DNA from: Heteronotia binoei
Taxonomy: Eukaryota
Direction: 5' to 3'
Length of the DNA: 64,000 nt
Assembly: GCF_032191835.1 (NCBI RefSeq)
Contig: NC_083227.1
Span: forward strand, 166,842,001 to 166,906,000
Numbering within the stretch: position 1 is the stretch's first letter; each line of letters starts with the position of its first letter. The notes beneath the pieces were generated by a model. The model was not told the origin of the DNA. It worked only from the letters and a program-made list of their open reading frames with translations, and did not search any database. Below, one piece after another: positions 1 to 64,000 of this stretch. The position numbers and the translations under genes were made by a program.

Positions 1-1455
1 TTAATCCCATATGTCCAGAACTGAAGCTAGCCCCCCCCCCAAGAAGATCAGCTTTGCACATGGGGGGGGGGGGGCTAGCTTCAGTTCTGGACATATGGAA
101 TTAAAATTATGAACTATATGAACCAATCAAATTATGCACCAATGAATTATAGCTTCCACACATAGTATTTACCAAAGGGGTGCCCTCAACCCCTCCTCCC
201 AGAACACCCTGCCATGCTTCCCACAGCCCTAAATGTGTGGAAGCTATAGTTCATTGGTTCATAATTTCATTGGCTCATAATTTCATAGGTTCATATAGTT
301 CATAATTTTAATCCCATATGTCCAGAACTGAAGCTAGCCCCCCCCCCCAAGAAGATCAGCTTTGCACATTGCGGGGGGGGGGGGCTAGCTTCAGTTCTGG
401 ACATATGGAATTAAAATTATGAACTATATGAACCAATCAAATTATGCACCAATGAATTATAGCTTCCACACATAGTATTTACCAAAGGGGTGCCCTCAAC
501 CCCTCCTCCCAGAACACCCTGCCATGCTTCCCACAGCCCTAAATGTGTGGAAGCTATAGTTCATTGGTTCATAATTTCATTGGCTCATAATTTCATAGGT
601 TCATATAGTTCATAATTTTAATCCCATATGTCCAGAACTGAAGCTAGCCCCCCCCCCCAAGAAGATCAGCTTTGCACATGGGGGGGGGGGGCTAGCTTCA
701 GTTCTGGACATATGGAATTAAAATTATGAACTATATGAACCAATCAAATTATGCACCAATGAATTATAGCTTCCACACATAGTATTTACCAAAGGGGTGC
801 CCTCAACCCCTCCTCCCAGAACACCCTGCCATGCTTCCCACAGCCCTAAATGTGTGGAAGCTATAGTTCATTGGTTCATAATTTCATTGGCTCATAATTT
901 CATAGGTTCATATAGTTCATAATTTTAATTCCCTATGTCCAGAACTGAAGCTAGCCCCCCCCCCAAGAAGATCAGCTTTGCACATGGGGGGGGGGGGCTA
1001 GCTTCAGTTCTGGACATATGGAATTAAAATTATGAACTATATGAACCAATCAAATTATGCACCAATGAATTATAGCTTCCACACATAGTATTTACCAAAG
1101 GGGTGCCCTCAACCCCTCCTCCCAGAACACCCTGCCATGCTTCCCACAGCCCTAAATGTGTGGAAGCTATAGTTCATTGGTTCATAATTTCATTGGCTCA
1201 TAATTTCATAGGTTCATATAGTTCATAATTTTAATCCCATATGTCCAGAACTGAAGCTAGCCCCCCCCCCCAAGAAGATCAGCTTTGCACATGGGGGGGG
1301 GGGCTAGCTTCAGTTCTGGACATATGGAATTAAAATTATGAACTATATGAACCAATGAAATTATGCACCAATGAACTATAGCTTCCACACATAGTATTTA
1401 CCAAAGGGGTGCCCTCCTCCCAGAACACCCTGCCACGCTTCCCGCAGCCCTAAAT
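1..1455. repeat. Tandem satellite, ~308-bp unit, 4 full copies plus 1 partial; each unit is two hairpins
   Basis: Units start at 1, 308, 618, 925 and 1231. Arms 1-40 and 62-104 are inverted (21-nt loop); arms 105-163 and 233-307 are inverted (~69-nt loop). The array probably continues left of the window. Confidence 0.97.
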
Positions 1456-1872
1456 GCGCGGCTATGGCTGCTTCTCTGCGCTCACCCCCCTGCCCTGGAC
1501 CCCTCCGCTTGACCCCATCCTTACACACCCCTCAGCGTCCTCCCACCGCTTAGACTCCGTCCCTTCCAGCCGCGCTGTTTCCGGATGCTGCGTCTTCTGC
1601 TCACTGGCCTGGACGTCACTTCCTACTTCCGCTGCCAAGCCAGTGATTGGCTGAACCCAAAACGGGTTTCCAGCAGGGGGCACGAAGCCGGTGTGACGTC
1701 ACAAGCCAGCCTTCGGCAGTTCCCGGGCGCCCTCTCGGCCGGCGCCGTGCTGGGAGGGGCGGGGCCTGGGGGGGCGGAGCAGCCGCGGAGGGAGTTTGTT
1801 GTGTGGCGGGGAAGGTCGCGCTGCCGCCTCTGCAGGGATGGCCGGTTGCTTCTGCTGCGTGTGGGCTGAGGG
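1456..1872 (-). promoter_or_regulatory. CpG-island promoter of an unidentified gene, probably transcribed leftwards
   Basis: ETS/CRE composite GACGTCACTTCCT 1612-1624, second ETS site 1625-1632, CCAAT 1645-1651, full CRE TGACGTCA 1694-1701, GC box 1756-1765. Minus-strand donor G|GTGAGC at 1486/1485. Confidence 0.75.
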
Positions 1873-2775
1873 TAGGGTTGCCAAGTCCAGTTCAAGAAAT
1901 ATCTGGGGACTTTGGGGTGGAGCCAGGTCCCAGGAGACTTTGGGGGCGGAGCCAGGAGACTTTGGGGGTGGAGCCAGGAGACATTGGGGTTGGAGCCAGG
2001 AGACTTTGGGGTGGAGCCAGGAGACTTTGGGGCGGAGCCAGGAGACTTTGGGGGCGGAGCCAGGAGACATTACGGTTGGAGCCAGGAGACTTTGGGGTGG
2101 AGCCAGGAGACTTTGGGGTGGAGCCAGGAGACTTTGGGGGTGGAGCCAGGAGACTTTGGGGGGGTGGAGCCAGGAGACATTAGGGGTGGAGCCAGGAGAC
2201 TTTGGGGTGGAGCCAGGAGACTTTGGGGGTGGAGCCAGGAGACATTAGGGGTGGAGCCAGGAGACTTTGGGGGTGGGGCCAGGAGACTTTGGGGTGGAGC
2301 CGGGAGACTTTGGGGGTGGAGCCGGGAGACTTTGGGGGTGGAGCCAGGAGACATTAGGGGTGGAGCCAGGAGACTTTGGGGGTGGAGCCAGGAGACATTA
2401 GGGGTGGAGCCAAGATCAAGGCTGTGACAAGCATCCTTGAACTCCAAAGGGAGTTCTGGCCATCACATTTAAAGGGACGGCACACCTTTTCAATGCCTTC
2501 CTTCCATAGGAAATAATGAAGGATAGGGGCACCTCCTTTTGGGGCTCATAGAATTGAACCCCCTGGTCCAATCGTTTTGAAACTTGTGGGATATTTTGGG
2601 GAGAGGCACTAGATGCTGTACTGAAAATTTGGTGCCTCTACCCCAAAAAACAGCCCCCCCCCAGAGCCCCCGATACCCGCAGATCAATTCTCCATTATTT
2701 TCTATGGGAATAAATCTCCATAGGGAATAACAGAGTTCCCAGCAGACATTTCCCTCTCCTCCTCCCGCTTTCTGA
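1873..2775. mobile_element. Non-autonomous hAT-type MITE (TAGGGTTGCCA termini) with an expanded ~21-bp VNTR (~24 units); far end truncated
   Basis: Starts tagggttgccaagtcc. (GGGGTGGAGCCAGGAGACTTT)n runs ~1905-2410, and the body matches the other copies listed. Confidence 0.85.
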
Positions 2776-2975
2776 ATCAGGGCTACCGTGTTTTGTTTTT
2801 AGTAATTATTTTAGCTCGGGATGGGTGCTTCGGAGCTTGTGCAAAACCCTATTTGGTTAAGAAGCTACCGGTAAAATACCTTTAACCGTGTAGCCATGTT
2901 GGTTATAAGCAACAGAACAAAGTTTGAGTCCAGTGGCAGATTTAAGAGCAATAAAGTTTAATTGTATGCCCACTT

Positions 2976-3324
2976 GGGGAGGGACGGTGGCTCAGTGGCA
3001 GAGCATCTGCTTGGGAAGCAGAAGGTCCCAGGTTCAATCCCTGGCATCTCCAACTAAAAGGGTCCAGGCAAATAGGTGTGGGAAACGTCAGCTTGAGACC
3101 CTGGAGAGCAGGGGAGGGACAGTGGCTCAGTGGCAGAGCATCTGCTTGGGAAGCAGAAGGTCCCAGGTTCAATCCCTGGCATCTCCAACTAAAAGGGTCC
3201 AGGCAAATAGGTGTGGGAAACGTCAGCTTGAGACCCTGGAGAGCCGCTGCCTGAGTAGACAAGGCTGACTTTGATGGACTGAGGGGGGTCTGACTCAGTA
3301 CAAGGCAGCTTCATATGTTCATAT
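2976..3324 (+). mobile_element. tRNA-derived SINE with a duplicated head and a CR1-like tail
   Basis: A-box tggctcagtggcag and B-box ggttcaatccc each occur twice; the tail ends gcagcttcatatgttc. Confidence 0.85.
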
Positions 3325-4559
3325 AAATAAATCTAACATATCAAATGTCTATACTTCTTCAGATACATTGAAACAGATGTCCTCAAGCCTTACATATAGG
3401 TAGAGAGCTGGAGGGGTTAGTTACAGTTAAGTTGCATAAGTAACTGAGCAATACCCAAAAAGTATAGCTAAGATTCGATTAAAGCCGTTGGTGAGACCTG
3501 TGAATAGCAGCAAATAAGCATACAAATAACAGAGTTAACAAACAGATGTGAGAACTAAGTTTGAGCCCAGTAGCACCATTAAAACCAATAAAGTTTAATT
3601 CTGGTATAAGCAAGAACTGAGTGACTCAGCATGTGTAGACGCACACTTCTTCGGATACATTAAAACAAACTTCCTCAAGTATTACATATATATAGATGGG
3701 AGGGTTAGTTGCTGGGAAGGGCTAATAACATCCCATTAAACCTCTGCTTAAAAGGTAGAATACTTTTCTCCAGGCTTGCTGACAAACTTATTTGTGAACA
3801 GGATGCTTATTTGACTGGGGAGAGATTGCCTGGGAAGACCCAAGAGTTAACTGTTATGTCCCACCCCCCCTTTTATGCCACCTGGAGAACTGCAAACAGC
3901 CTGCATTAGTTGCCTGGGGAAAGTCTTGGCCTTTGTGCCCTGATTGGCCACTATGTGAGACAGGAGGCTGGACTAGATGGGCTATTGAGCTGCTCTTATG
4001 AGATCTAACACTAGAAGGCCAAATCTTCAACATAGCCATAGAGATAGAATGAGAAGTTAAAGCAAGGCTATTGCTACCTATATGTGCCAGTCCAAGCAAA
4101 GGTATGATTTTGAAGGCAAGGGTACAAGTGTCCAGGCAGCAAATAATCCAACAGGGAGGAGAAGTAGCAGCTCACTGTGTCCAGAACAGGTACCTTCATA
4201 GCTACACAGTCTAGACTGCCTTAGTGCTATTTTCAAAAGTACACAGTCGGGATTTGAGCCTATGTAGGGCTCCAAATAGGCCCGGGGGGTGGGGAAGTCC
4301 TGTCCCTTTAATAAAGGCTTAATGTGTGGAAATTGTCCGCTGAAGTTTTTCATGGCATGGAAGTAAATAATATCACCTGGTAAATAACATCCCATTGAGC
4401 TCCTATTTAAAAAGGACAGGACTTTTTTTCTCCAGGCAATTGGCAGCCTTATCTACAACCTACTAAGTTCCCCTGAGAAAGCAAGAGATCTTGAACCTAC
4501 CAAGCGCTCCAGCCAGTTTACAGGAGTCTGTCTCTTCTCTCTCCATAGGAGCATCAGTT

Positions 4560-5022
4560 TAAGTTTATTTCAGTTTATATCCCGCCCTTCCCACCGAAGT
4601 GGCTCAGGGTGGCTCACAACATATAAAATCTAACATAGAATTTTAAATTTAAAATACATCAATTACAACAGTTAAAACGGTAAAATAATAAAACATTTAA
4701 ACAGCGATCTATCAAAATACCACACTGAACCTTCTATAGAATTTCTAATGCCAGTTAATTATAGGCCAGCCGGAAAAGGGCTGTCTTACAGGCCCTGCGG
4801 AACTGGCCAAGGTCCCGCAGGGCCCTCACCTCTTCTGGCAGCTGGTTCCACCAGCAAGGAGCCGTTACAGAGAAGGCCCTGTCCCTGGTGGATTTCAGAC
4901 GGGCCTCCTTTGGCCCGGGGATAGCAAGCAGATTTTGAGAGCCCTATCTCAGTACTCTCTGGGGAACATGTGGGGAGAGACGGTCCCTAAGGTAGGCAGG
5001 TCCTAGGCCATATAGGGCTTTA
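4560..5022 (-). mobile_element. L2 LINE 3' fragment
   Basis: Tail tatcccgccc...ctcagggtggctcac and decayed ORF2 C-terminus match the L2 at 27-29 kb. Confidence 0.8.
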
Positions 5023-5574
5023 AACTACTCAGAACTACTCTTGCTTAGGTAGACATATCTGCTCACTCCCTTCAGCTGGGAATAGGGAGTCTTCTCTTTC
5101 ACCCCCTCATGGACTACTTGATCCAAGCCGTTAATGCTCACTAAGGGGATATTTATAGTCATTAAGAAATATAATCGTGGACTGCAGGTTATGTCATTTT
5201 AAGGCATGCATATAAAACTAAATCATTCACAGATTTCAAGCTCATTAATATTTTGAACTGAGTTTCCTAAGAGTTGTGCAGAGGACTCCTTTAGATAAAC
5301 CACAGATTCTAGAAAATGGAATAAACTACATATTGGTTGCTTGGACTGCTATTAAAAGAACCTCAGCATTTTAATTTTGTGGCGTTTAAGCCCCTAGAAG
5401 GTCAAATAAAATAGCCATCATCAAATAATATATAAATCTTGAAAACACTTTCAAATAAAGAAATGATCTTTCAGAAATACTACATAATCAACTATTATTA
5501 GGACTACGTTAGAGTGCTGCATAAAGCTAAACCTGTTATTTCCTCACAAGTTGTGATGGGAGGGGGAGCAAATA

Positions 5575-6365
5575 TGGTTGAAGACAGGATACAGGATGAT
5601 CTTGACAGGCTAGACAACTGGGCTAAAACAAATAAAATGAATTTTAACAGGGATAAATGTCAAGTTCTTCATCGAGGTAGAGAAAATCAAAAGCATAATT
5701 ATAGGATGGGGGAAACTTGTCTTGGCAGTAGTATGTGCAAAATAGGACTTAGCATACCATACACTGAACATGAGTTAGCAGTATGATGTAGTAGCTAAAA
5801 AGGCAATTGTGATTTTGGGAATTCTAGAAAACAAGTATAGTGTCCAGATCATGTGAAGTGATGGCATCACTTTCCTTTGTTCTGGTTAGACTTCACCTAG
5901 AGTCTTTTGTTCAGTTTTGGGCACCACCATTTAAGAAGGATATAGATAAGCTGGAACGTGTCTAGAGGAGAGCATCAAAGATGGTGAGGGGTCTGGACAA
6001 GTCCTATGAGAAAAGGCTGAAGGAGCTGACCGTGTTTCGCCTAGAAAGGAAACAACTGAGAAGTGATATGATAACCATCTTCAAGTACTTGAAGGGCTGT
6101 CATACAAAAGATGGCGTGGAGTCTTCTGTTGCCTCAGAAGGTTGAGCCAAAACCAAAGAGTTGAAAACAAATCAGAAGAGTTTTTAGCTAAACAGAACTT
6201 CCTTGACAGAGCAGTGGAGCAGGCTTCCTCGGGAGGTGGTGGGCGCTCCTTCTTTGGAGGTTTTTAAACAGACCAGACGGCCATCTGACAGCAATGCTGA
6301 TTCTGTGAACTTACGCAGATATGAGGAGGGCAGGAAGGGTTGCATCAGTACTTAGTTTTTGTGAC
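5575..6365 (+). mobile_element. CR1 LINE 3' fragment (decayed RT)
   Basis: RIQDDLDRLDNWAKTNKMNFNRDKCQVLH is a CR1 ORF2 motif, followed by stops and frameshifts. Confidence 0.88.
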
Positions 6366-11741: not shown

Positions 11742-12421
11742 TAGGGTTGCCAATCCCCAGGTGGGGGCAGGGGATCCCCCGGTTTGGAGGCCCTCCCCGG
11801 GCTTCAGGGTCGTCAGAAAGCGGGAGGAGGGGACGGAAATGTCTGCTGGGAACTCTGTTATTCCCTAGGGAGATTTATTCCCATAGAAAATCATGGAGAA
11901 TTGATCCGCGGGTATCCGGGGCTCTTGGGGGGGTTGTTTTTTGGGGTAGAGGCACCAAATTTTCAGTATAGCATCTAGTGCCCCTCCCCAAAATAACCCC
12001 CCCCCCATGTTTCAAAAAGATTGGACCAGGGGGTCCAATTCTATGAGCCCCAAAAGAAGCTGTTTTTTGAGATAGAAGCACCAAACTTTCCATATAGTAT
12101 CCAGTGCCTCTTCCCTAAATACTCTCCAAGTTTCAAAAAGATTGGACCAGGGGGTCCAATTCTATGAGCCCCAAAAGAAGGTGCCCCTATCCTTCATTAT
12201 TTCCTATGGAAGGAAGGCATTGAAAAGGTGTGCCGTCCCTTTCAATGTGATGGCCAGAACTCCCTTTGGAGTTCAACGATGCTTGTCACAGCCTTGCTCT
12301 TGGCTCCACCCCCAAAGTCTCCTGGCTCCACCCCCAAAGTCTCCTGGCTCCACCCCCCAAAGTCTCCTGGCTCCACCCCCAAAGTGCCCAGGTATTTCTT
12401 CAATGGGACTTGGCAAGCCTA
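11742..12421. mobile_element. VNTR-bearing hAT MITE, complete, reverse orientation
   Basis: Terminal inverted repeats at both ends; 8-bp TSD ccgagaac / ccgagacc; ~4 VNTR units. Confidence 0.9.
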
Positions 12422-13000
12422 CCGAGACCGATGAGAGCCGAGACGGAGCCCAACGTTTGGGAGGGCAGCTCGCAAGGCGCCGCCACCGTTGGAGCCCCGC
12501 AAAAGCCAGCTGATCGCCCTCGGTGCGAAAGAGCAGCAGCGCGGAGGAGCAGCCACGAAGCCGGGGGCCCAGGCAGGCAGGCTCCCCCTTTTGGCCGTCG
12601 AGCATCGCCTGTCTCGGCCGACAGGCGGCGGGGGCGTGGTCAGATATTTGCATAATCTGGTCTCTTGCAGCAGCAGCAGGCGGCGGCGGCGGCTGGGCTC
12701 TCTGCCTGCGAGGCGGAGCGTGGCGCTAAGCGGCGGCAGGGGCAGAGAGCGGGGCTGCGGGGAGGGGAAGCAGAGGACACGCGCGGCACCGTCGCTTCGC
12801 CAGCCTCGCATCGCAGGGGATTCCAGGGGCGCCGGAGCGGGTAAGCGAGCGCTGCTCACGCCCAAAGACACGGCTGCGGCTTCAGCGTGGGGCTCGGGTG
12901 CTCCGAGGCAGAGGATGGGAAGGACACAGACCAATAAGGTCCCCACCTCGCAGCACCTTGCAATCCAACACAAGCCCCGCGGAGGAGCGGGAAGACGAGG
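12422..13000 (+). promoter_or_regulatory. CpG island with a probable non-coding first exon (ends at 12840), likely of RTBDN
   Basis: GGGGCGTGG box ~12630, octamer palindrome 12641-12660, (GCA)4(GCG)n leader, donor CGG|GTAAGC at 12840/12841. The next strong + acceptor with an ATG is at 26636. Linkage to RTBDN is inferred. Confidence 0.6.
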
Positions 13001-13001
13001 G

Positions 13002-13950
13002 GCATCTGAAGCTGCCTTCTGCTGAATCAGACCCTTCTTGGTGCATCGAAGTCAGTCTTGTCTTCTCAGACTGGCAGCGGCTCTCCAGGGTCTCAAGCTT
13101 GAGGTTTTTCACACCTACTTGCCTGGACCCTTTTTAGTTGGAGATGCCGGGGATTGAACCTGGGACCTTCTGCTTACCAAGCAGATGCTCTGCCACTGAG
13201 CCACCGCCCCTCCCCTAACTGGCAGCGGCTCTCCAGGGTCTCAAGCTTGAGGTTTTTCACAGCTATTACCTGGACCCTTTTTAGTTGGAGATGCCAGGGA
13301 TTGAACCTGGGACCTTCTGCTTACCAAGCAGATGCTCTACCACTGAGCCACCGTCCCTCCCCTAACTGGCAGCGGCTCTCCAGGGTCTCAAGCTTGAGGT
13401 TTTTCACAGCTATTACCTGGACCCTTTTTAGTTGGAGATGCCAGGGATTGAACCTGGGACCTTCTGCTTATCAAGCAGATGCTCTACCACTGAGCCACTG
13501 TCCCTCCCCTAACTGGCAGCGGCTCTCCAGGGTCTCAAGCTTGAGGTTTTTCACAGCTATTACCTGGACCCTTTTTAGTTGGAGATGCCAGGGATTGAAC
13601 CTGGGACCTTCTGCTTACCAAGCAGCTGCTCTACCACTGAGCCACCGTCCCTCCCCTAACTGGCAGCGGCTCTCCAGGGTCTCAAGCTTGAGGTTTTTCA
13701 CAGCTATTACCTGGACCCTTTTTAGTTGGAGATGCCAGGGATTGAACCTGGGACCTTCTGCTTACCAAGCAGATGCTCTGCCACTGAGCCACCGTCCCTC
13801 CCCTAACTGGCAGCGGCTCTCCAGGGTCTCAAGCTTGAGGTTTTCACGCCTATTTACCTGGACCCTTTTGAGTTGGAGATGCCAGGGATTGAACCTGGGA
13901 CCTTCTGCTTACCAAGCAGATGCTCTGCCACTGAGCCACTGTCCCTCCCC
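13002..13950 (-). mobile_element. tRNA-derived SINE with six tandem 147-bp head units
   Basis: Unit starts at 13071, 13219, 13366, 13513, 13660 and 13807; a single tail at 13002-13070. This explains the repetitive 270-aa ORF. Confidence 0.92.
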
Positions 13951-16273: not shown

Positions 16274-16827
16274 TAGGGTTAAGTCCAATTCAAGAAATAT
16301 CTGGGGACTTTGGGGGTGGAGCCAGGAGACTTTGGGGGTGGGGCCAGGAGACTTTGGGGTGGAGCCAGGAGACATTAGGGGTGGAGCCAAGATCAAGGCT
16401 GTGACAAGCATAATTGAACTCCAAAGGGAGTTCTGGCCATCACATTTAAAGGGACAACACACCTTTTTAAATGTCTTCCTTCCATAGGAAATAATGAAGG
16501 ATAGGGGCACCCTCTTTTGGGGCTCATAGAATTGGACCCCCTGGTCCAATATTTTTGAAACTTGGGGGGTACTTTGGGGAGAGGCACTAGATACTATATG
16601 GAAAGTTTGGTGCCCCTATCTCAAAAAACAACTCCCCCAGAGCCCCAGATACCCGCGGATCAATTCTCCATGATTTTCTATGGGAATAAATCTCCATCGG
16701 GAATAATAGCGTTCCCAGCAGACATTTCCCTCCCCTCCCCTCCCCCCGCTTTCTGATGACCCTGAAGCGGGGGGAGGGCCTCCAAACCGTGGGATCCCCT
16801 GCCCCCACCTGGGGATTGGCAACCCTA
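16274..16827. mobile_element. VNTR-bearing hAT MITE, complete
   Basis: TIRs tagggtt.../...ggcaacccta; 8-bp TSD gaaggaac / gagggaac; 4 VNTR units. Confidence 0.9.
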
Positions 16828-23270: not shown

Positions 23271-23757
23271 TAGGGTTGCCAAATCCAATTCAAGAAATAT
23301 CTGGGGACTTTGGGGGTGGAGCCAGGAGAAAGGTTGTGTGTGGCAAGCATAATTGAACTCCAAAGGGAGTTCTGGCCATCACATTTAAAGGGACCGCACA
23401 CCTTTTAAATGCCTTCCTTTTGTTGGAAATAATGAAGGATGTGGGGCATCTTCTTTTGGAGCTCAAAGAATTGGACCCCCTGGTCCAATCTTTTTGAAAC
23501 TTGGGGGGTCTTTTGAAGAGAGGTGTTGGATGCCAAGTTGCAAATGTGGTACCTCTACCTCAAAAAACAGCCCCCCCCCAGAGCCCTAGATACCCTCGGA
23601 TCAATTCTCTGTTATTCCCAATGCGAATCAGTCTCCTTAGGGAATAATGAAGTGCCTAGCAGACATTCCCCCCTCCCCTGCTTTCTGATGACTCTGAAGC
23701 GAGGGGAGGGCCTCCAAACCTGGGGATTCCCTGCCCCCACCTGGGGATTGTGCAACT
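23271..23757. mobile_element. hAT MITE copy (1 VNTR unit) with an interrupted right end
   Basis: Starts tagggttgccaaatcc; the terminal motif reappears at 24260-24287. Confidence 0.8.
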
Positions 23758-34572: not shown

Positions 34573-34773
34573 NNNNNNNNNNNNNNNNNNNNNNNNNNNN
34601 NNNNNNNNNNNNNNNNNNNNNNNNNNNNNNNNNNNNNNNNNNNNNNNNNNNNNNNNNNNNNNNNNNNNNNNNNNNNNNNNNNNNNNNNNNNNNNNNNNNN
34701 NNNNNNNNNNNNNNNNNNNNNNNNNNNNNNNNNNNNNNNNNNNNNNNNNNNNNNNNNNNNNNNNNNNNNNNNN
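34573..34773. other. Assembly gap (~200 N)
   Basis: Run of N. Confidence 1.
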
Positions 34774-36755: not shown

Positions 36756-37257
36756 GGGTTATCAATCCCCAGGTGGGGGCAGGGGATCCCCCAGTTTGGA
36801 GGGCCCCCCCCCGCTCCAGGGTCATCAGAAATTGGGGGAGAGGGAAATGTCTGTTGGGCACTCCGTTATTCCCTATGGAGACCAATTCCCATAGAGTATA
36901 ATGGAGAATTGATCAATGGGTATCTGAGGCTCTTGGGGGAGGCTGTCTTTTGAGGCAGAGATACCAAACTCTTAGCATAGCATCCAGTGCCTCTCCCCAA
37001 AATAGCCTCCCAAGTTTCAAAAGGACTGGACCAGGGGGTCCAATTCTATGAGCCCCAAAAGAAGGTGCCCCATCCTTCATTATTTCCAGTGGAGGGAAGG
37101 CTTTTAAAAGGTGTGCGGTCCCTTGAAATGTGATGGCCAGAACTCCCTTTGGAGTTCAATTATGCTTGTCCCAACCTTGCTCCTGGCTCCACCCCCAAAG
37201 TCTCCTGGCTCCACCCCCAAAGTCCCCAGATATTTATTGAATTGGACTTGGCAACCC
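36756..37257. mobile_element. hAT MITE copy, reverse orientation, 2 VNTR units
   Basis: Ends ttggcaaccct; body matches the family. Confidence 0.82.
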
Positions 37258-38048
37258 TCTACTCAGCAGCAGACATCTGTTTTGCATACAGAGGCCCTGT
37301 TCACACAGCGTGTTGAGTCTGTGTCAAACTGACCCGGTTCTGTTCCGAATTATCTTTGTTCCAGATATTATCGATCAGACTGCCATACTGCAATTTGAAT
37401 CACTCCGCACATGATGTGCTGATGTGCATATGCGCATGTGCATAGGTCAAAAAACATTATGTGGTTATGCGGGTATGTGCATATCGCAAAGTAGTAAAAA
37501 AAAAAAGATGACCATAAACTGGATGTCTGAGGCTCCTTTTGCTCTGGGACAGCCTTCAGACATCCAGAAGTTGGTTAATATTGTAGCAAAACTATCCAGA
37601 TGAAGAAAACTACGAGGTGAAACCAGACAACTCAAAAAACACCACAAAGGAGCAGGTAACAAAATAATCTGGTTTGGAGAAGGATTGGGGGGGGGGCCCA
37701 CAACGATTGACTACCGGGAGGCAGATGATGCTGTCTGATCAGCCACTTTTAATCCGGTAGGAAACAGCAGCGACAACTGATTAAACTGTGCGTCTGAACA
37801 GGGCCGCTATGTCTCAAGCTGCATTCACAGTATCTCCAGTTTAAACGGATCAGGTGATGGGAAAGACCTCTCCCTGCAGTCTTGGAGAACTGGTGCCAGT
37901 CAGAGCACTTCAGTACTAAGCTTGATAGACCAATGGTCTGAGTCACTAGAAGGCAGCTTCATGTGCTTATTAATGACAGACGATGTTGTCACAATGCAAA
38001 TGGGTCGGCTCAGTCCAGAAGGTGCTGAAAGAATGGTTCTTTTCACAG

Positions 38049-41819: not shown

Positions 41820-42261
41820 AAAGAAAAATTGGGGGGTACTTTGGGGAGCAGCACTAGATACTATACTGAAAATTTGGTGCCTCTACCTCAAAAAACAGCT
41901 CCCCCAGAGCCCCCGAAACCTCCAGATCAATTCCCCATTATACTCTATGAGAATCGATCTCCACATAGGGAATAATGAAGTGCTCAGCAGACGTTTCCCT
42001 CCCCCCCTCCCCCCGTTTCTGGCGAGTCTGAAGCAGGGGATTGGCCTCTCTACTCACAAGTTGCTGCCAACTTCTTCACAGCAGCACAGACACACCATCC
42101 CAAGAGGAAGCCTTTCAATCGGAGACTGAAGCCTTCGGAGGTGCAAAGGCACATGGTCCTCTGGGGGCGGGGCTTCCCCCCGCCGGCCAGCTGACTGGGG
42201 GCGGGAAGGAGCCTGGGAAAGCAGAAGAACTCCCGCTGAGACCTGGGGATTGGCAAGCCTA
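41820..42261. mobile_element. hAT MITE right-half fragment
   Basis: Family body ending ggggattggcaagccta. Confidence 0.7.
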
Positions 42262-44579: not shown

Positions 44580-47310
44580 AGTAAATTTATATTTTACCCT
44601 GCCAATGGGCTCAGGGCTGATTACAACATAATTAAACAATTAAAACAATAACGTGACAACCAATAAAAACAATGCATAAAAACACTAGACTTCCTGGTTA
44701 CAGAGCAGGAGGCAAAATAATTCATAACAGTTTCAGCTGGCCAAAAATCCAAACAATGATAACTGGGCTGTTAGATGAAACCGTTCAGCACATTTCTGTA
44801 CATTTCAGTGTGCTACAATAAGGGAGCCGATCTGATTTAGCTTGGAAGTCCATTGCCTTAATTGAAGGCCTGGAAGAGCAGCTCCATCTTACAAGCCCTG
44901 CAAAACGGTAACAAATCCGGCAGGGCTCTAACCTCCAATGGGAGCATGTTCCGTGAGGCCCGCGGCCAGGGCAGAAAAAACCCTGGCCCTAGTCAAGGCT
45001 AGATGGGTGTCCTTAGGGCCGGGGACAACCAGCAAATGTTGGTTCTCTGAGTGTAGAGCCCTTCAGGGTACATACAGGGATAGGTGGTCCTCAGATATGT
45101 CAGTCAGTTTGGTGTAGTGGTTAAGTGTGCGGACTCTTATCTGGGAGAACCGGCTTTGATTCTCCACTCCTCCACTTGCACCTGCTGGAATGGCCTTGGG
45201 TCAGCCACAGCTCTGGCAGAAGTTGTCCTTGAAAGGGCAGCTGCTGTGAGAGCCCTCTCCAGCCCCACCCACCTCACAGGGTGTCTGTTGTGGGGGAGGA
45301 AGGCAAAGGAGATTGTGAGCCGCTCTGAGACTCTTCGGAGTGGAGGGCGGGATATAAATCCACTATCTTCATCTACCTCACAGGGTGTCTGTTGTGGGGG
45401 AGGAAGGGAAAGGAGATTGTGAGCCGCTCTGAGACTCTTCGGAGTGGAGGGCGGGATATAAATACAATATCTTCATCTACCTCACAGGGTGTCTGTTGTG
45501 GGGGAGGAAGGCAAAGGAGATTGTGAGCCGCTCTGAGACTCTTCGGAGTGGAGGGCGGGATATAAATCCAATATCTTCATCTACCTCACAGGGTGTCTGT
45601 TGTGGGGGAGGAAGGGAAAGGAGATGGTGAGCCGCTCTGAGGCTCTTCGGAGTGGAGGGCGGGATATAAATCCAATATCTTCATCTACCTCACAGGGTGT
45701 CTGTTGTGGGGGAGGAAGGGAAAGGAGATGGTGAGCCGCTCTGAGGCTCTTCGGAGTGGAGGGCGGGATATAAATCCAATATCTTCATCTACCTCACAGG
45801 GTGTCTGTTGTGGGGGAGGAAGGGAAAGGAGATGGTGAGCCGCTCTGAGGCTCTTCGGAGTGGAGGGCGGGATATAAATCCAATATCTTCATCTACCTCA
45901 CAGGGTGTCTGTTGTGGGGGAGGAAGGTAAAGGAGATTGTGAGCCGCTCTGAGACTCTTCGGAGTGGAGGGCGGGATATAAATCCAATATCTTCATCTAC
46001 CTCACAGGGTGTCTGTTGTGGGGGAGGAAGGTAAAGGAGATTGTGAGCCGCTCTGAGACTCTTCGGAGTGGAGGGCAGGATATAAATCCAATATCTTCAT
46101 CTACCTCACAGGGTGTCTGTTGTGGGGGAGGAAGGTAAAGGAGATTGTGAGCCGCTCTGAGACTCTTCGGAGTGGAGGGCGGGATAGAAATCCAATATCT
46201 TCTTCTTCAGTCCCAGGTTGCACAGGGCTTTGAAAGTCAATACCAAAACCTTGAAGCGAATCCAATGCAAATGGCATCGCGCTGGTCGGATACATGCCCG
46301 CACAGGCAATGCCATCAACAGGGGTGCCGCCACATTTTGCACCAGCTGGAGCTTCTGGATTAACTCCAAGGGCAAGCCCACATAGAGCGAGTTACAGTAG
46401 TCCAGTCTGGAAGTGACCATTGCGTGGGTCACTGTAGCGAAGTCCTGAGGGAGAGATCGGGTGCCAGCTGCCTAATCTGTTGAAAGTAACAAAAGGCCAA
46501 CTTGGCAACTGTCGTGACCCGGGCCTCCGTAGAAAGTGAGGCATCCAGGATCACTCCCAGGCTCTTCACCTGGGCTGGCACAAGAGGTGTGCTATCCAGG
46601 TCTGGTAGCCTGATACCCTGAGCTACTCCACTACAGGACCTCTGTCTTCGTTGAATTAAGCTTCAGATGACTCTGCTGCAACTACCCAGCCACGGCCCCC
46701 AGTGCCTCATCGGATGATCTGGGGTGGAGTCCAGACAACCATCCATCGACAGATAGAGCTGGATGTCATCTGTATACTGGTGACAACCCAACCCAAATCC
46801 CGAGGCTAACTGGGTGAGGGGGTGGATATAGATGTCGAAAATCATTGGTGAGAGAATTGCTTCCTACAGCACACCACGTTCAAGTGGCTATCGCGGGGAA
46901 ACCTCCTCGCAAAGCACCACCCTCTGTCCCCAACCATGGAGAAAGGAGGAAAGCCACTGTAAGCCAAAGCCCTGAACTCCTATATCGCAAGGCGGTGGGT
47001 CTTGAGGTCATAGTTGACTGTGTCAAATGCTGCTGTCAGATCTAAAACCAACAGCAGCCCTGACCCATCTCAATCCAGGTGTCTCTGGAGGTCATCTGTG
47101 AGGGCAAGTAATGCAGTCTCTGTTCTGTGGCCTGGGCAGAAGCTGGACTGGACTGGATCAAGGATAGATTCCTCCTCCAGGAAGGCCGGAAGCTCTTCAG
47201 GCACCACCTTCCCAACTATCTTGCCCAGAGGAATGGAAGGTTAGACACTGGGCGGTAGTTGGTGGACCCATAGGATCCAGTGTTGGTTTTTTCAAAAAGC
47301 GGACGAATCA
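44580..47310 (-). mobile_element. Older L2 split by a nested SINE array
   Basis: L2 sequence resumes at 46210 after the insertion; short target duplication (c)agtc. Confidence 0.75.
45105..46209 (+). mobile_element. SINE with nine tandem 104-bp tail units
   Basis: Unit starts at 45271, 45375, 45479, 45583, 45687, 45791, 45895, 45999 and 46103. Confidence 0.92.
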
Positions 47311-47655
47311 CTGTCGCTGACTGTATTAGAACCAGCACCTACTCTACAATTGTAACCAGATCGTTGGTGAGAATGAACGTTTTATAGCACACTACTATTT
47401 GCATCAAATAAATGTTGAAAACTAAGAGAGCTGTTTGGGGGTTGGGGTAGAGAAATGCTGACATTCTCTGGACTCAGTAAAAGCCATCAGAACCAACAAG
47501 ATTTCAAGGTCCCCTCCACACATATTCTAGTCCATGTTCTTACTACCAGAGAGCTTCCTCAGCCTGTGCTTCTGTGAGCCTGCGCCACTCAGACACCCAC
47601 TGAAAGCTGCATCAAAGCTCTGTGCTGGTTTACATTATTATTTTTCCTTCCTCAG

Positions 47656-47952
47656 ATGTACAAGGATGGGAAGGAGCTGTGTGAGACCATCTGGGACGAC
47701 TCTTTCGTAGTAAGCACTGATCCCTGTGAGTGCCTGACACTGACTGCTTCTGACACAGTTTTTTCAGCCTCTCATTCCCGCCATGAAGATAGTGATAGCA
47801 CTGAAGATCTGGAAGCCACAAAGGTGGACAGCAGAAGAATGGGCCGCAAAGGGCTTTGTCCAGGTAGCCCCCTGCTCCAGCGTCTGAAAAAGAACCTGCA
47901 GAAGCGTTCTGTCTTCATGGAAGATGTGGAGGGAAGCGGGAGTGGGTTCTGA
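47656..47952 (+). CDS. RTBDN: RTBDN terminal coding exon
   Basis: ttccttcctcag|ATG...TGA. Encodes MYKDGKELCETIWDDSF...LQKRSVFMEDVEGSGSGF*. The joined CDS is 789 nt (262 aa plus stop) with consistent phases. The symbol rests on adjacency to RNASEH2A (as in human) and the GSGSG C-terminus. Confidence 0.9.
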   Translation: MYKDGKELCETIWDDSFVVSTDPCECLTLTASDTVFSASHSRHEDSDSTEDLEATKVDSRRMGRKGLCPGSPLLQRLKKNLQKRSVFMEDVEGSGSGF

Positions 47953-48422: not shown

Positions 48423-48855
48423 CAGGGTTGCCAATCCCCAGCTGGGGGCAGGGAATCCCCTGGTTTGGAGTCGCTCCCCCCATTCAGGGTTATCAGAAAA
48501 TGGGGGGGAGGGGCTGAATATCCACTGGGCACTCCATTATACCCTATGGAGACCTCTTCCCATAGGGTATAATGGAGAATTGATCTGTGGGTATCTGGGA
48601 CTTGGGGGGGGGCATCTGGTGCCTCTCCTAAAAAAAACCCCCACATTTCAAAAAGATTGGACCAAGGGGTCCAGTTCTGTGAGTTCCAAAAGAAGGTGCC
48701 CCTATCCTCCATTACTTCCAATGAAGGGAAGGCATTTAAAAGGAGCACCATCCCTTTAAATGTGACGGCCGGAACTCCCTTCAGAGTTCAATCATTCTTG
48801 TTACAAGGGCTCCTGGCTGCACTGCCCAAGTCCCAAGCAGGATCTGGCAACCCTA
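48423..48855. mobile_element. hAT MITE copy without the VNTR
   Basis: cagggttgccaatcccc...gatctggcaacccta. Confidence 0.8.
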
Positions 48856-53119: not shown

Positions 53120-53605
53120 GCTGGTTTGGTGTAGTGGTGAAGTGTGCGGACTCCTATCTGGGAGAACCGGGTTTGATTCCCCACTCCTCCACTTGCAGCT
53201 GCTGGAATGGCCTTGGGTCAGCCTTATCTCTGGTAGGAGTTGTCCTTGAAAGGGCAGCTGCTGTGAGAGCCCTCTCCAGCCCCACCCACCTCACAGGGTG
53301 CCTGTTGTGGGGGAGGAAGGGAAAGGAGATTGTGAGCCGCTCTGAGACTCTTCGGAGTGGAGGGCGGGATATAAATCCAATATCTTCATCTACCTCACAG
53401 GGTGCCTGTTGTGGGGGAGGAAGGGAAAGGAGATTGTGAGCCGCTCTTAGACTCCTTGGAGTGGAGGGCGGGATATAATCCAATATCTTCATCTACCTCA
53501 CAGGGTGCCTGTTGTGGGGGAGGAAGGGAAAGGAGATTGTGAGCCGCTCTTAGACTCCTTGGAGTGGAGGGCGGGATATAAATCCAATATCTTCTTCTTC
53601 TTCTT
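53120..53605 (+). mobile_element. SINE with three tandem ~104-bp tail units
   Basis: Unit starts at 53288, 53392 and 53495; same junction as the 45-kb array. Confidence 0.9.
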
Positions 53606-61825: not shown

Positions 61826-62452
61826 GCATCAATGCATGATGCTGCGCTACGGCAAGAAGAAAATAGCCCCGGTTTCCGCTCCCAATTCTTGAACTCGCAC
61901 ATATTGGCCCAGAATTCGAATAGTAAGATGAAGGCACAAAACCAGAGTTGCAATTGTTCTCATTCCCGACGTTTTAAACCTCATTGCAATTGCTTTATTA
62001 ACACATGCTCGCAAACAATCATCAGAGGCTATTTCTTATGCTCCGGATGAGCAGCTTCAAAGCTGCATCCCGACCTGGATTAAAAAAAAAAGGTTCCTGG
62101 CGTTTCCATCAATTAATGATACTGTGCTATCGCAAGAAGAAAATAGCCCCGGTTTCCGCTCCCAATTCTTGAACTCACACATACTGGCCCAGAATTCGGA
62201 TAGTAAGATGAAGGCACAAAACCAGAGTTGCAATTGTTCTCATTCCCGACGTTTTAAACCTCATTGCAATTGCTTTATTCACGCATGCTCGCAAACAATC
62301 ATCAGAGGCTCTTTCTTATGCTCCGGATGAGCAGCTTCAAAGCTGCATTCCGACCTGGATATAAAAAAAAAGGTTGCTGGCGTTTCCATCAATTAATGAT
62401 ACTGTGCTACGGCAAGAAGAAAATAGCCCCGGTTTCTGTTCCCACTTCTTGA
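61826..62452. repeat. 280-bp tandem duplication (~2.2 copies) upstream of the RNASEH2A ATG
   Basis: gcaagaagaaaatagccccgg occurs at 61852, 62132 and 62412. Confidence 0.92.
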
Positions 62453-62885
62453 AAAGTCCTGCGAAAGAGCGCCAGAAGCACAGCCCGCGGCTCGGGAATA
62501 ATTTTAATTGGATATGCCACAAGTGACTTTATGGCTATGGCATAAAGCGTGGCGGAGGACACTGAACGCTCCACTGTTTCAACATGTTGGTTACTCGCGT
62601 CAGTAATAAATTCTGCAGTCTTGTGTTTTCATGGGGAATGGCCCATTCTCCCCTGCAGCAAAGCTCCCCTGCCTTTGACGGACAGAAATTCAACAGGCGT
62701 ATTTTTCTCGCGGCATGCACACGCGATATGCAATGGGACCTTCACCATCCCACCGTTATATAACTGAGAGTCGCACACCCGCTGCATTTTGCATTCGGGA
62801 AGCGGCTCCAGCACGTGGGCGCCGTTAAAATAAGTTTGGGGTATGATTGCCATCTTTGTTGATGGAAGAGGAAAATCCAAGAAGG

Positions 62886-63659
62886 TAGGGTTGGGGGCAG
62901 GGGATCCCCCGGTTTGGAGGCCCTCCCCCGCTTCAGGGTCCTCAGAAAGCAGGGGGAAGGGAAATGTCTGCTGGACACTCCATTATTCCTTAGGGAGATT
63001 TATTCCCATAGAAAATAATGGAGAATTGATCCGCGGGTATCTGGGGCTCTGGGGGGGGGCTGTTTTTGAGGTAGAGGCACCAAATTTTCTGCATACCATC
63101 CAACGCCTCTTCCCTAAATACCCTCCAAGTTTCAAAAAGATTGGACCAGGGGGTCCAATTCTATGAGCCCCCAAAGAAGGTGCCCCTATCCTTCATTATT
63201 TCCTATGGAAGGAAGGCATTGAAAAGGCGTGCGGTCCCTTTAAATGTGAGGGCCAGAACTCCCTTTGGAGTTCAATGATGCTTGTCACAGCCTTGATCTT
63301 GGCTCCACCCCCCCCAAAGTCTCCTGGCCCCACCCCCCAAAGTCTCCTGCCCCCCCAAAGTCTCCTGGCCCCACCCCCAAAGTCTCCTGGCCCCACCCCC
63401 CAAAGTCTCCTGCCCCCCAAGTCTCCTGGCCCCACCCCCAAAGTCTCCTGGCCCCACCCCCCAAAGTCTCCTGGGCCCACCCCCCCAAAGTCTCCTGGTC
63501 CCACCCCCAAAGTCTCCTGGCCCCCCCCCAAAGTCTCCTGGCCCCACCCCCCCAAAGTCTCCTGGCCCCACCCCCAAAGTCTCCTGGCTCCACCCCTAAA
63601 GTCTCCTGGGCCCACCCCCAAAGTCCCCAGATATTTCTTGAATTGGACTTGGCAACCCA
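62886..63659. mobile_element. VNTR-bearing hAT MITE, reverse orientation, ~15 VNTR units
   Basis: Family body; (ccccaaagtctcctggccccacc)n ~63300-63625; ends ttggcaaccca. Confidence 0.88.
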
Positions 63660-64000
63660 GGGACCCTCTCCCGTCGGGAGCGCGGGGAAGAGAAGCCGAG
63701 GAGCTCTGCGGGTGGAATGAGCAGCTGGGGAAGGTTCATCTGCGGATCCCGGGGAAGGGAAGGGGAGGGCAGCGTCTTTGTTCCCGCCTCCTGCAGCCCA
63801 GCGGGAGAGGGAAGGAGCGGCACAACCGGTCTTCCGCGCTGCCTCCGCCCACCGCAAGCGGGCTGCCTATAAAGCGCGGCGGGTCCTCGTGCCGCCTGCT
63901 CGGAGAAGAGGCCGCGGGGATTCGGGCTGCTGCTGCTGCTGCTGGATCGCGGTGCGCGGACGAGTCGGTAGGGAGGGCGCCCGCCCGCCCCTTGCATTCC
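63660..64000 (+). promoter_or_regulatory. CpG-island/TATA promoter and non-coding first exon, divergent from RNASEH2A (probably PRDX2 by synteny)
   Basis: GC box ccgccc ~63845, TATAAAG 63868-63874, (GCT)n leader, donor TCG|GTAGGG at 63967/63968. Human PRDX2 is head-to-head with RNASEH2A; no coding sequence is visible here. Confidence 0.6.

Follow-up and report, generated by a model that had tools for sequence, protein, structure and literature searches.

A dyad-symmetric tandem array beside a CpG-island promoter in the gecko Heteronotia binoei: head-to-tail amplification of a unit that may descend from a fold-back seed

The locus

The sequence analysed here, referred to as the window, is a stretch of 64,000 nt from contig NC_083227.1 of Heteronotia binoei. 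Its left end is occupied by a tandem array that is cut by the window start, and the array adjoins a CpG island with promoter-type motifs (Table 1). Tandem Repeats Finder reports a single array at 1-1456, with a period of 306, 4.8 copies and 97% matches. About 1.47 kb of the array is visible and, since it is already in the middle of a unit at position 1, the figure of 4.8 copies is a lower bound and the array extends leftward. Full units, of which there are four, measure 306-310 bp and share 99.0-100% identity with one another; the last partial unit (1231-1456) has 94.5% identity. Elsewhere in the window, a run of Ns occupies 34573-34773.

Each unit consists, in this order, of an arm designated L (115-116 nt), a loop of 21 nt (loop1), an arm designated R (100-104 nt), and a loop of 69 nt (loop2). 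The array thus shows both properties of a dyad-symmetric tandem repeat, namely head-to-tail repetition of one monomer and the presence, within each monomer, of two long segments in inverse orientation. A 16-bp motif makes up the inner half of each arm, repeated three and a half times in L and two and a half times in R, and the arms end in homopolymeric tracts at loop1, L closing with C10-11 and R opening with G11-13, with lengths that vary among the copies. An earlier note on this DNA had described an alternation of arm, loop1, inverted arm and loop2, with loops of 21 and about 69 nt; this layout is borne out by alignment and by Tandem Repeats Finder, and the same is true of the extra subrepeat of about 16 bp in one class of arms (L has it, R is without it) and of the G and C tracts of unequal length.

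Table 1. Features of the array and of the adjoining CpG island (window coordinates)
Feature	Position	Strand	Remarks
Whole tandem array	1-1467	.	306-310 bp unit, repeated head to tail at least 4.8 times; right end is a short L remnant
Reference unit	543-849	+	L 543-658 (116 nt), loop1 659-679, R 680-780 (101 nt), loop2 781-849
L arms	1-40 (cut by window start), 233-348, 543-658, 850-964, 1156-1271	+	Four full copies
R arms	62-163, 370-473, 680-780, 986-1086, 1293-1392	+	Five copies; reverse complement of L minus one 16-bp subrepeat
Loop1, 21 nt	Starts 41, 349, 659, 965, 1272	+	Identical and in the same orientation in 5/5 copies; lies between pairing C and G tracts
Loop2, 69 nt	Starts 164, 474, 781, 1087	+	4/4 interior copies identical and in the same orientation; no CpG
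Edge R arm (R4)	1293-1392	+	Two substitutions from the L type, two from the interior R type
Edge loop2, 61 nt	1393-1453	+	8-bp indel relative to interior copies; CpGs at 1436 and 1443 where the interior has TpG/CpA
L remnant / short inverted repeat	1454-1467	+	Can pair with the end of R; last stretch with homology to the unit
CpG island	1456-1900	.	GC 0.66, CpG observed/expected 0.70; unique in the window
Promoter-type motifs of the island	CCAAT 1646; CRE TGACGTCA 1694; GC boxes 1756, 1771		Found by motif search
GTGAGC, candidate splice donor	1485-1480	minus	13-24 nt beyond the array end

Both types of fold-back in the array are far more stable than expected by chance. As single-stranded DNA, L-loop1-R has a folding energy of -98.9 kcal/mol (z -20.4) and R-loop2-L of -100.7 kcal/mol (z -21.6), and in neither case was any of the 200 shuffled sequences as stable. 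The second of these structures is nothing but the junction of the R arm of one unit with the L arm of the next.

Divergence of the arms

The four full L arms (L1-L4, from left to right) were aligned with the five R arms (R0-R4) in reverse complement. An L arm and its inverted R counterpart differ by 2-4 substitutions, by the one additional 16-bp subrepeat in L, and by the length of the terminal tract. Arms of like orientation, on the other hand, are nearly invariant: L1, L2 and L4 are identical and L3 carries two private substitutions, while R0-R3 are identical except for the end of the G tract. The 16-bp indel separates every L from every R. The substitutions at alignment columns 27 and 81 split the two classes in the same way, with one exception at column 81, where L3 has the R-type base, as one of the two substitutions peculiar to it. 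Columns 17 and 36 hold two further substitutions, which the interior R arms have in common. Private variants are present in units 2 and 4. The loops are likewise constant: none of the five copies of loop2, the edge variant included, is inverted.

The promoter-side edge

The last unit of the array, which faces the CpG island, is different from the rest. The loop1-proximal part of its R arm is identical to that of the interior R arms, and in the loop2-proximal part, columns 17 and 36 are L-like and homogenisation with the interior units has not taken place. Relative to the interior copies, the 3' part of the edge loop2 and the next 8 nt differ by four substitutions, and all four oppose a CpG at the edge to TpG or CpA in the interior. 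There is a single CpG in positions 1-1392 (observed/expected 0.02). The edge copy has therefore kept an older, undeaminated state, and the interior units go back to one copy already depleted of CpG.

The homology between the unit and the flank passes through loop2 and comes to an end 8-14 nt into L, which is precisely the stretch that pairs with the end of R across loop2. Six of the first eight nucleotides at 1454-1467 match the start of L (P = 0.0042 for six or more matches by chance), and both mismatches are CpG versus TpG; past a 3-nt gap, five of six more bases match, up to 1467.

As to the island itself, the possibility that it is part of a neighbouring dispersed repeat is ruled out by its unique sequence in the window. 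The minus-strand GTGAGC just beyond the array could be the splice donor that the earlier note had placed close to the array start. Open reading frames on the island have no match in Pfam, and a search with an N-terminal motif of a candidate neighbouring kinase gene found no match either. Exact look-up of ten short open reading frames from the array and its flank found none of the proteins on record; the flank controls were equally absent, and this look-up is therefore uninformative.

How the present copies arose

Taken together, the sorting of the same indel and the same substitutions between L and R, the likeness of arms of the same orientation, and the loops that are never flipped leave one simple reading: all of today's arms go back to a single L/R pair, and the complete unit was multiplied by direct duplication. 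Unequal exchange between direct repeats, or slippage at them during replication, is the ordinary route for this. What can be read in this way is the history of the existing copies, as concerted evolution erases older states, such as an earlier array of different origin.

The earlier note had preferred another mechanism, by which a segment of about 110 bp is built into an array arm by arm, through iterated template switching, fold-back replication or a rolling hairpin. The strict alternation of the arms between two fixed loops speaks for it, and ODIRA can indeed yield 2n+1 copies in alternating orientation (PMC4689423). Tandem copies of any unit with one inverted repeat must, however, read arm-loop1-arm'-loop2-arm, so that the alternation follows trivially from unit duplication and is not evidence for repeated inversion. 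Iterated fold-back, or alternate copying of the two strands of one duplex, should also leave neighbouring arms exactly complementary when formed, whereas the variants sort with the direction of the arm; the gain or loss of the 16 bp would have had to recur at about nine junctions, compared to a single origin under unit duplication. A segment of about 100 bp is, moreover, an implausible carrier of the replication origin that ODIRA needs. The preference for iterated template switching over unequal crossing-over is thus reversed by the distribution of the indel and the substitutions, and we consider the arm-by-arm mechanism extremely improbable. Its rolling-hairpin version, which should produce flip and flop loops or inverted blocks with L-oriented arms of the R type, is excluded, because both loops are non-palindromic and each is found in one orientation in 5/5 copies. 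A relic of a parvovirus-type terminal hairpin was rejected as well, since the loops show no flip/flop and nothing similar was found among viral contigs. What stands of the proposed fold-back origin is a single event at the start: as the iterated builder of the present copies it fails, and as a seed it stays plausible.

A two-phase origin

We propose that the array originated in two phases, a fold-back seed followed by head-to-tail amplification of a local, dyad-symmetric 306-bp monomer, and give this reading a probability of roughly 0.55. In the first phase, a native R segment would have been located beside the CpG-island promoter, bounded by two short interrupted inverted repeats; one of these would be the C tract and G tract around what later became loop1, and the other the repeat of 8-14 nt around the later loop2. 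A nascent 3' end that had copied R, loop2 and the short repeat could then snap back on the end of R, and backward copying of R would yield its inverted copy, L, joined directly to the short repeat. At the other end of R, a similar part may have been played by the complementary C and G tracts on either side of loop1. The product of the seeding step would be R-loop2-L-loop1-R, a small inverted duplication or triplication.

In the second phase, as the sequence shows, L and R diverged first, by gain of the 16-bp subrepeat and a few substitutions, after which the L-loop1-R-loop2 unit was duplicated head to tail several times, resulting in at least 4.8 near-identical units. The unit on the promoter side escaped homogenisation, and the interior units are located outside the presumably unmethylated island. 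The order of events in this phase, arm divergence and then unit duplication, can be read directly from the alignment of the copies.

The odds of a single fold-back event as the seed are, to judge by the sequence, about even. Several observations argue for it. The homology between unit and flank stops exactly in the stretch that can pair with the end of R; loop1 lies between C and G tracts that complement each other; the sizes of arms, spacers and junctions fit those of published small inverted triplications; and ODIRA junctions likewise keep native short interrupted inverted repeats. Against it, the L remnant at the right end could be no more than a last unit truncated by chance, although the phase of such a truncation would fall so close to loop2 in only about 5% of cases (14-17/306). 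It also counts against the two-phase model that it is read from the assembly, and there from the right junction, where the 8-14 nt repeat of the flank can pair with the end of R across loop2; the predicted left junction lies beyond the window.

Alternative explanations

The unit is shaped like a MITE with long terminal inverted repeats, and a short fold-back or MITE-type element (TIRs of about 100 nt) might have landed by the promoter and then been duplicated in tandem together with a spacer; the candidate elements are L-loop1-R (about 240 bp) and R-loop2-L (about 287 bp). Transitions from MITE to satellite are documented, for example Xstir, miDNA4 and Angel (PMC12628747). We searched the remaining 62.5 kb of the window with blastn (word sizes 9 and 7), with nhmmer and with a mismatch-tolerant pattern search, and found no copy of the unit outside 1-1467, whereas other repeat families in that sequence recur at least seven times. 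A 25-mer from the arm has no exact match in metagenome or viral collections. The unit is also absent from the public run X1 (Logan contigs, share 0.05), which we compared with positions 1-6000: the depth is near zero on the array and 10^4-10^5 on SINEs. This run covers only dispersed repeats (SINEs and an element with a 22-bp minisatellite), at 85-95% likeness, and is probably derived from another squamate, so that it is neutral on the assembly. No target-site duplication is recognisable and the outer ends of L and R show no direct repeat, the outer flanks of L and R within the array being the loops themselves and the left flank lying beyond the window, and to our knowledge the ends of L and R carry no terminal motif of a known transposon superfamily. 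Finally, loop2 and the first 8-14 nt of L run into the CpG-bearing flank, and a transposon would need the extra assumption of a truncated last element. On balance this origin is unlikely, though by no means negligible.

An assembly artefact, in which palindromic or chimeric long reads or a mis-assembled contig end created or inflated the array, is a quite improbable explanation. It would agree with the contact between the array and the window start, with the absence of the array from X1, the single run found, and with the homopolymer lengths that differ among copies, as is typical of sequencing noise. Chimeras should produce one large perfect palindrome or alternation around the same adapter, in contrast to the two different loops seen here, one of which, loop2, is homologous to the flank. 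Nor would an artefact account for the fixed differences between the arms, the private variants of some units, or the gradient of CpG decay and partial homogenisation in the edge unit. A role for the promoter, with the array kept for its NF-Y (CCAAT) sites, for cruciforms, or for a hairpin RNA such as a small-RNA precursor, appears very improbable. The strong predicted hairpins, the CpG island no more than 25 nt away, and the density of CCAAT/ATTGG pentamers (18 in 1.46 kb, or 12.4 per kb, versus 2.2 per kb elsewhere) would be compatible with such a role. The mismatches between the arms and the 16-bp indel, however, have become fixed without compensation, so the pairing is not being maintained, and the matches of the hairpins to microRNA families in Rfam are all below threshold (29-62 bits versus gathering scores of 90-230; the best is MIR7533, with 61.8 bits versus 230) and reflect a generic hairpin shape only. 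Extrusion of cruciforms would be disfavoured in both palindromes, by a G/C-clamped centre with a 21-nt spacer in the one around loop1 and by a 69-nt spacer in the one around loop2. We found no sign of function in the sequence of the array, which is probably a neutral, lineage-specific repeat.

Relationship to known systems

The closest known kind of sequence is the tandem repeat with long inversely oriented segments in the monomer, and the gecko array can be regarded as a small, local, vertebrate member of it. Such monomers have been called uncommon (PMC13081366). The same source describes TmSat2 of Tribolium madens, with a 704-bp monomer and inverted segments of about 300 bp, and a satellite of Trichogramma brassicae, with a 385-bp monomer and 80-bp inverted repeats. 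In these satellites, as in the gecko, a monomer with two inverted segments is repeated head to tail, and both the units and the unit junctions can fold back. The gecko array has no sequence similarity to either of them and, in contrast to their megabase (peri)centromeric arrays, is a single short array of 4.8 or more copies (1.5 kb visible) by a vertebrate promoter.

Small inverted triplications (SIT), with median DUP/IN/DUP sizes of 148/160/148 bp, a spacer of about 30 bp and a reverse-complementary junction of about 6 bp, have been explained by the fold-back of flaps or ends in lagging-strand synthesis, and the direct repeats that they contain are substrates for slippage (PMC13334657). The gecko array has the same direct-inverted-direct layout, with short spacers and short reverse-complementary junctions, and in scale it is closer to them than to ODIRA amplicons: the arms measure 100-116 nt, the two spacers 21 and 61-69 nt, and the repeats at the junctions 8-14 and 10-13 nt. 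SIT have been described as somatic or mutant-strain events of three copies, which tend to be removed (PMC13334657), and this type of error has so far been catalogued in yeast mutants and tumours; the gecko array, by contrast, is part of an assembled genome, its arms have diverged, and the pair of direct and inverted copies has been amplified further. That a small inverted triplication was fixed in the vertebrate germline at the edge of a CpG island, and then seeded a growing tandem array, is a tentative suggestion, with somewhat less than an even chance of being correct.

Inverted triplications produced by ODIRA share with the gecko array the alternating orientation and the lack of distal loss (PMC4689423; PMC10766183). 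Their junctions preserve native short interrupted inverted repeats together with the loops (PMC4689423), and the right junction of the gecko array would fit this pattern. ODIRA amplicons, however, are of kilobase size, with an obligatory replication origin and with arms that are exact complements at birth, whereas the gecko arms are about 100 bp long and their present copies come from direct duplication. Arrays derived from MITEs (Xstir, miDNA4, Angel; PMC12628747) are similar in that they consist of tandem units with terminal inverted repeats and stem-loop structures; the gecko array differs from them in that we found neither dispersed copies (in the 62.5 kb searched) nor a target-site duplication nor a terminal motif that could be recognised. 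Squamate satellites derived from SINEs (PMC10702118) are, like this array, lineage-specific short tandem arrays in gecko genomes. They consist of SINE fragments with tRNA-like heads and are without a long inverted repeat, and the array studied here is dissimilar to them. Two SINE-derived tandem arrays are found in the same window, at 2976-3244 and 13070-13950.

Implications

Fold-backs that alternate along an array arise automatically in any tandem unit that holds one inverted repeat, and annotators should be cautious in reading a mechanism from them. The structural effects of the array are likely to include single-stranded hairpins during replication and instability of the copy number, and the site, beside a promoter, is likely to be a hotspot of stalled replication and of variation in copy number.

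A little new, in our opinion, are the history that can be read at the edge and the connection that may exist with small inverted triplications. If a small inverted triplication was the seed, the locus would represent a datable case of a dyad-symmetric satellite monomer born from unique DNA and not from a transposon, with the ancestral half-site still kept at the promoter-side edge of the array. Because the amplified product and a less-changed edge copy have both been kept, the order of events is readable from one sequence; if the seeding step is correct, this order would be inversion, arm divergence, unit amplification, and decay of CpG outside the island, and the gecko array would link fold-back inverted triplications with the birth of satellite DNA.

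Dispersed repeats, CpG islands and exons

A repeat of ~900 bp, with a 22-bp minisatellite inside it, is dispersed over eight sites in the window (see table), and is hugely abundant in run X1, a single public sequencing run probably from another squamate. In three copies the same end of the repeat is adjoined by CpG-island-like DNA; these three islands have no homology to one another. Their position next to the repeat may reflect an insertion preference for promoters, or may be a coincidence.

The island beginning at 1456 also borders the array of 306-310 bp units, and carries promoter-type motifs. Each array unit contains four CCAAT/ATTGG pentamers, several of them in a good NF-Y-like context, and this gives 18 across the array (1-1456), or 12.4 per kb, as compared to 2.2 per kb in the remaining window.

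Single copies of the 103-104 bp sequence adjoin GAA/GAG-type microsatellites at ~15.0, 32.2 and 43.2 kb, so that this repeat, like the tRNA-headed SINE pieces, is probably a piece of an interspersed element expanded into arrays. A CpG-rich stretch (61.4-61.8 kb) lies directly beside the 280-bp tandem repeat.

A last exon at 47578-47949 matches the folate-receptor family weakly and looks retbindin-like. Convergent to it are minus-strand exons at ~56.6-61.7 kb, which we take to read like RNase H2 subunit A; a Pfam search with two pieces of these exons gave no match.

Every unit of both arrays of tRNA-headed SINE pieces has a tRNA-like call by ARAGORN, and the two arrays match the SINE-derived satellites described in squamates and geckos (PMC10702118).

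Repeats, promoter-type motifs and exon in the window
Feature	Position	Strand	Details
~900-bp dispersed repeat	1865-2776
	11813-12423	-
	16274-16756	+
	23271-23688	+
	36834-37267	-
	41825-42021	+
	48517-48805	-
	62942-63658	-
22-bp minisatellite	1930-2412		22 copies
	12297-12385		4 copies
	63310-63625		~14 copies
CpG-island-like DNA beside ~900-bp repeat	1456-1870
	12401-13100
	63601-64000
CCAAT box, island adjoining array	1646
Full CRE, same island	1694
GC boxes, same island	1756 and 1771
103-104 bp tandem repeat	45271-46206		9 copies, 98% alike
	53288-53598		3 copies
280-bp tandem repeat	61827-62453		2.2 copies, 93% alike
Tandem array of tRNA-headed SINE pieces	2976-3244		135 bp x 2
	13070-13950		147 bp x 6, 97% alike
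Last exon, weak folate-receptor-family match	47578-47949	+	Pfam PF03024, E 9e-4
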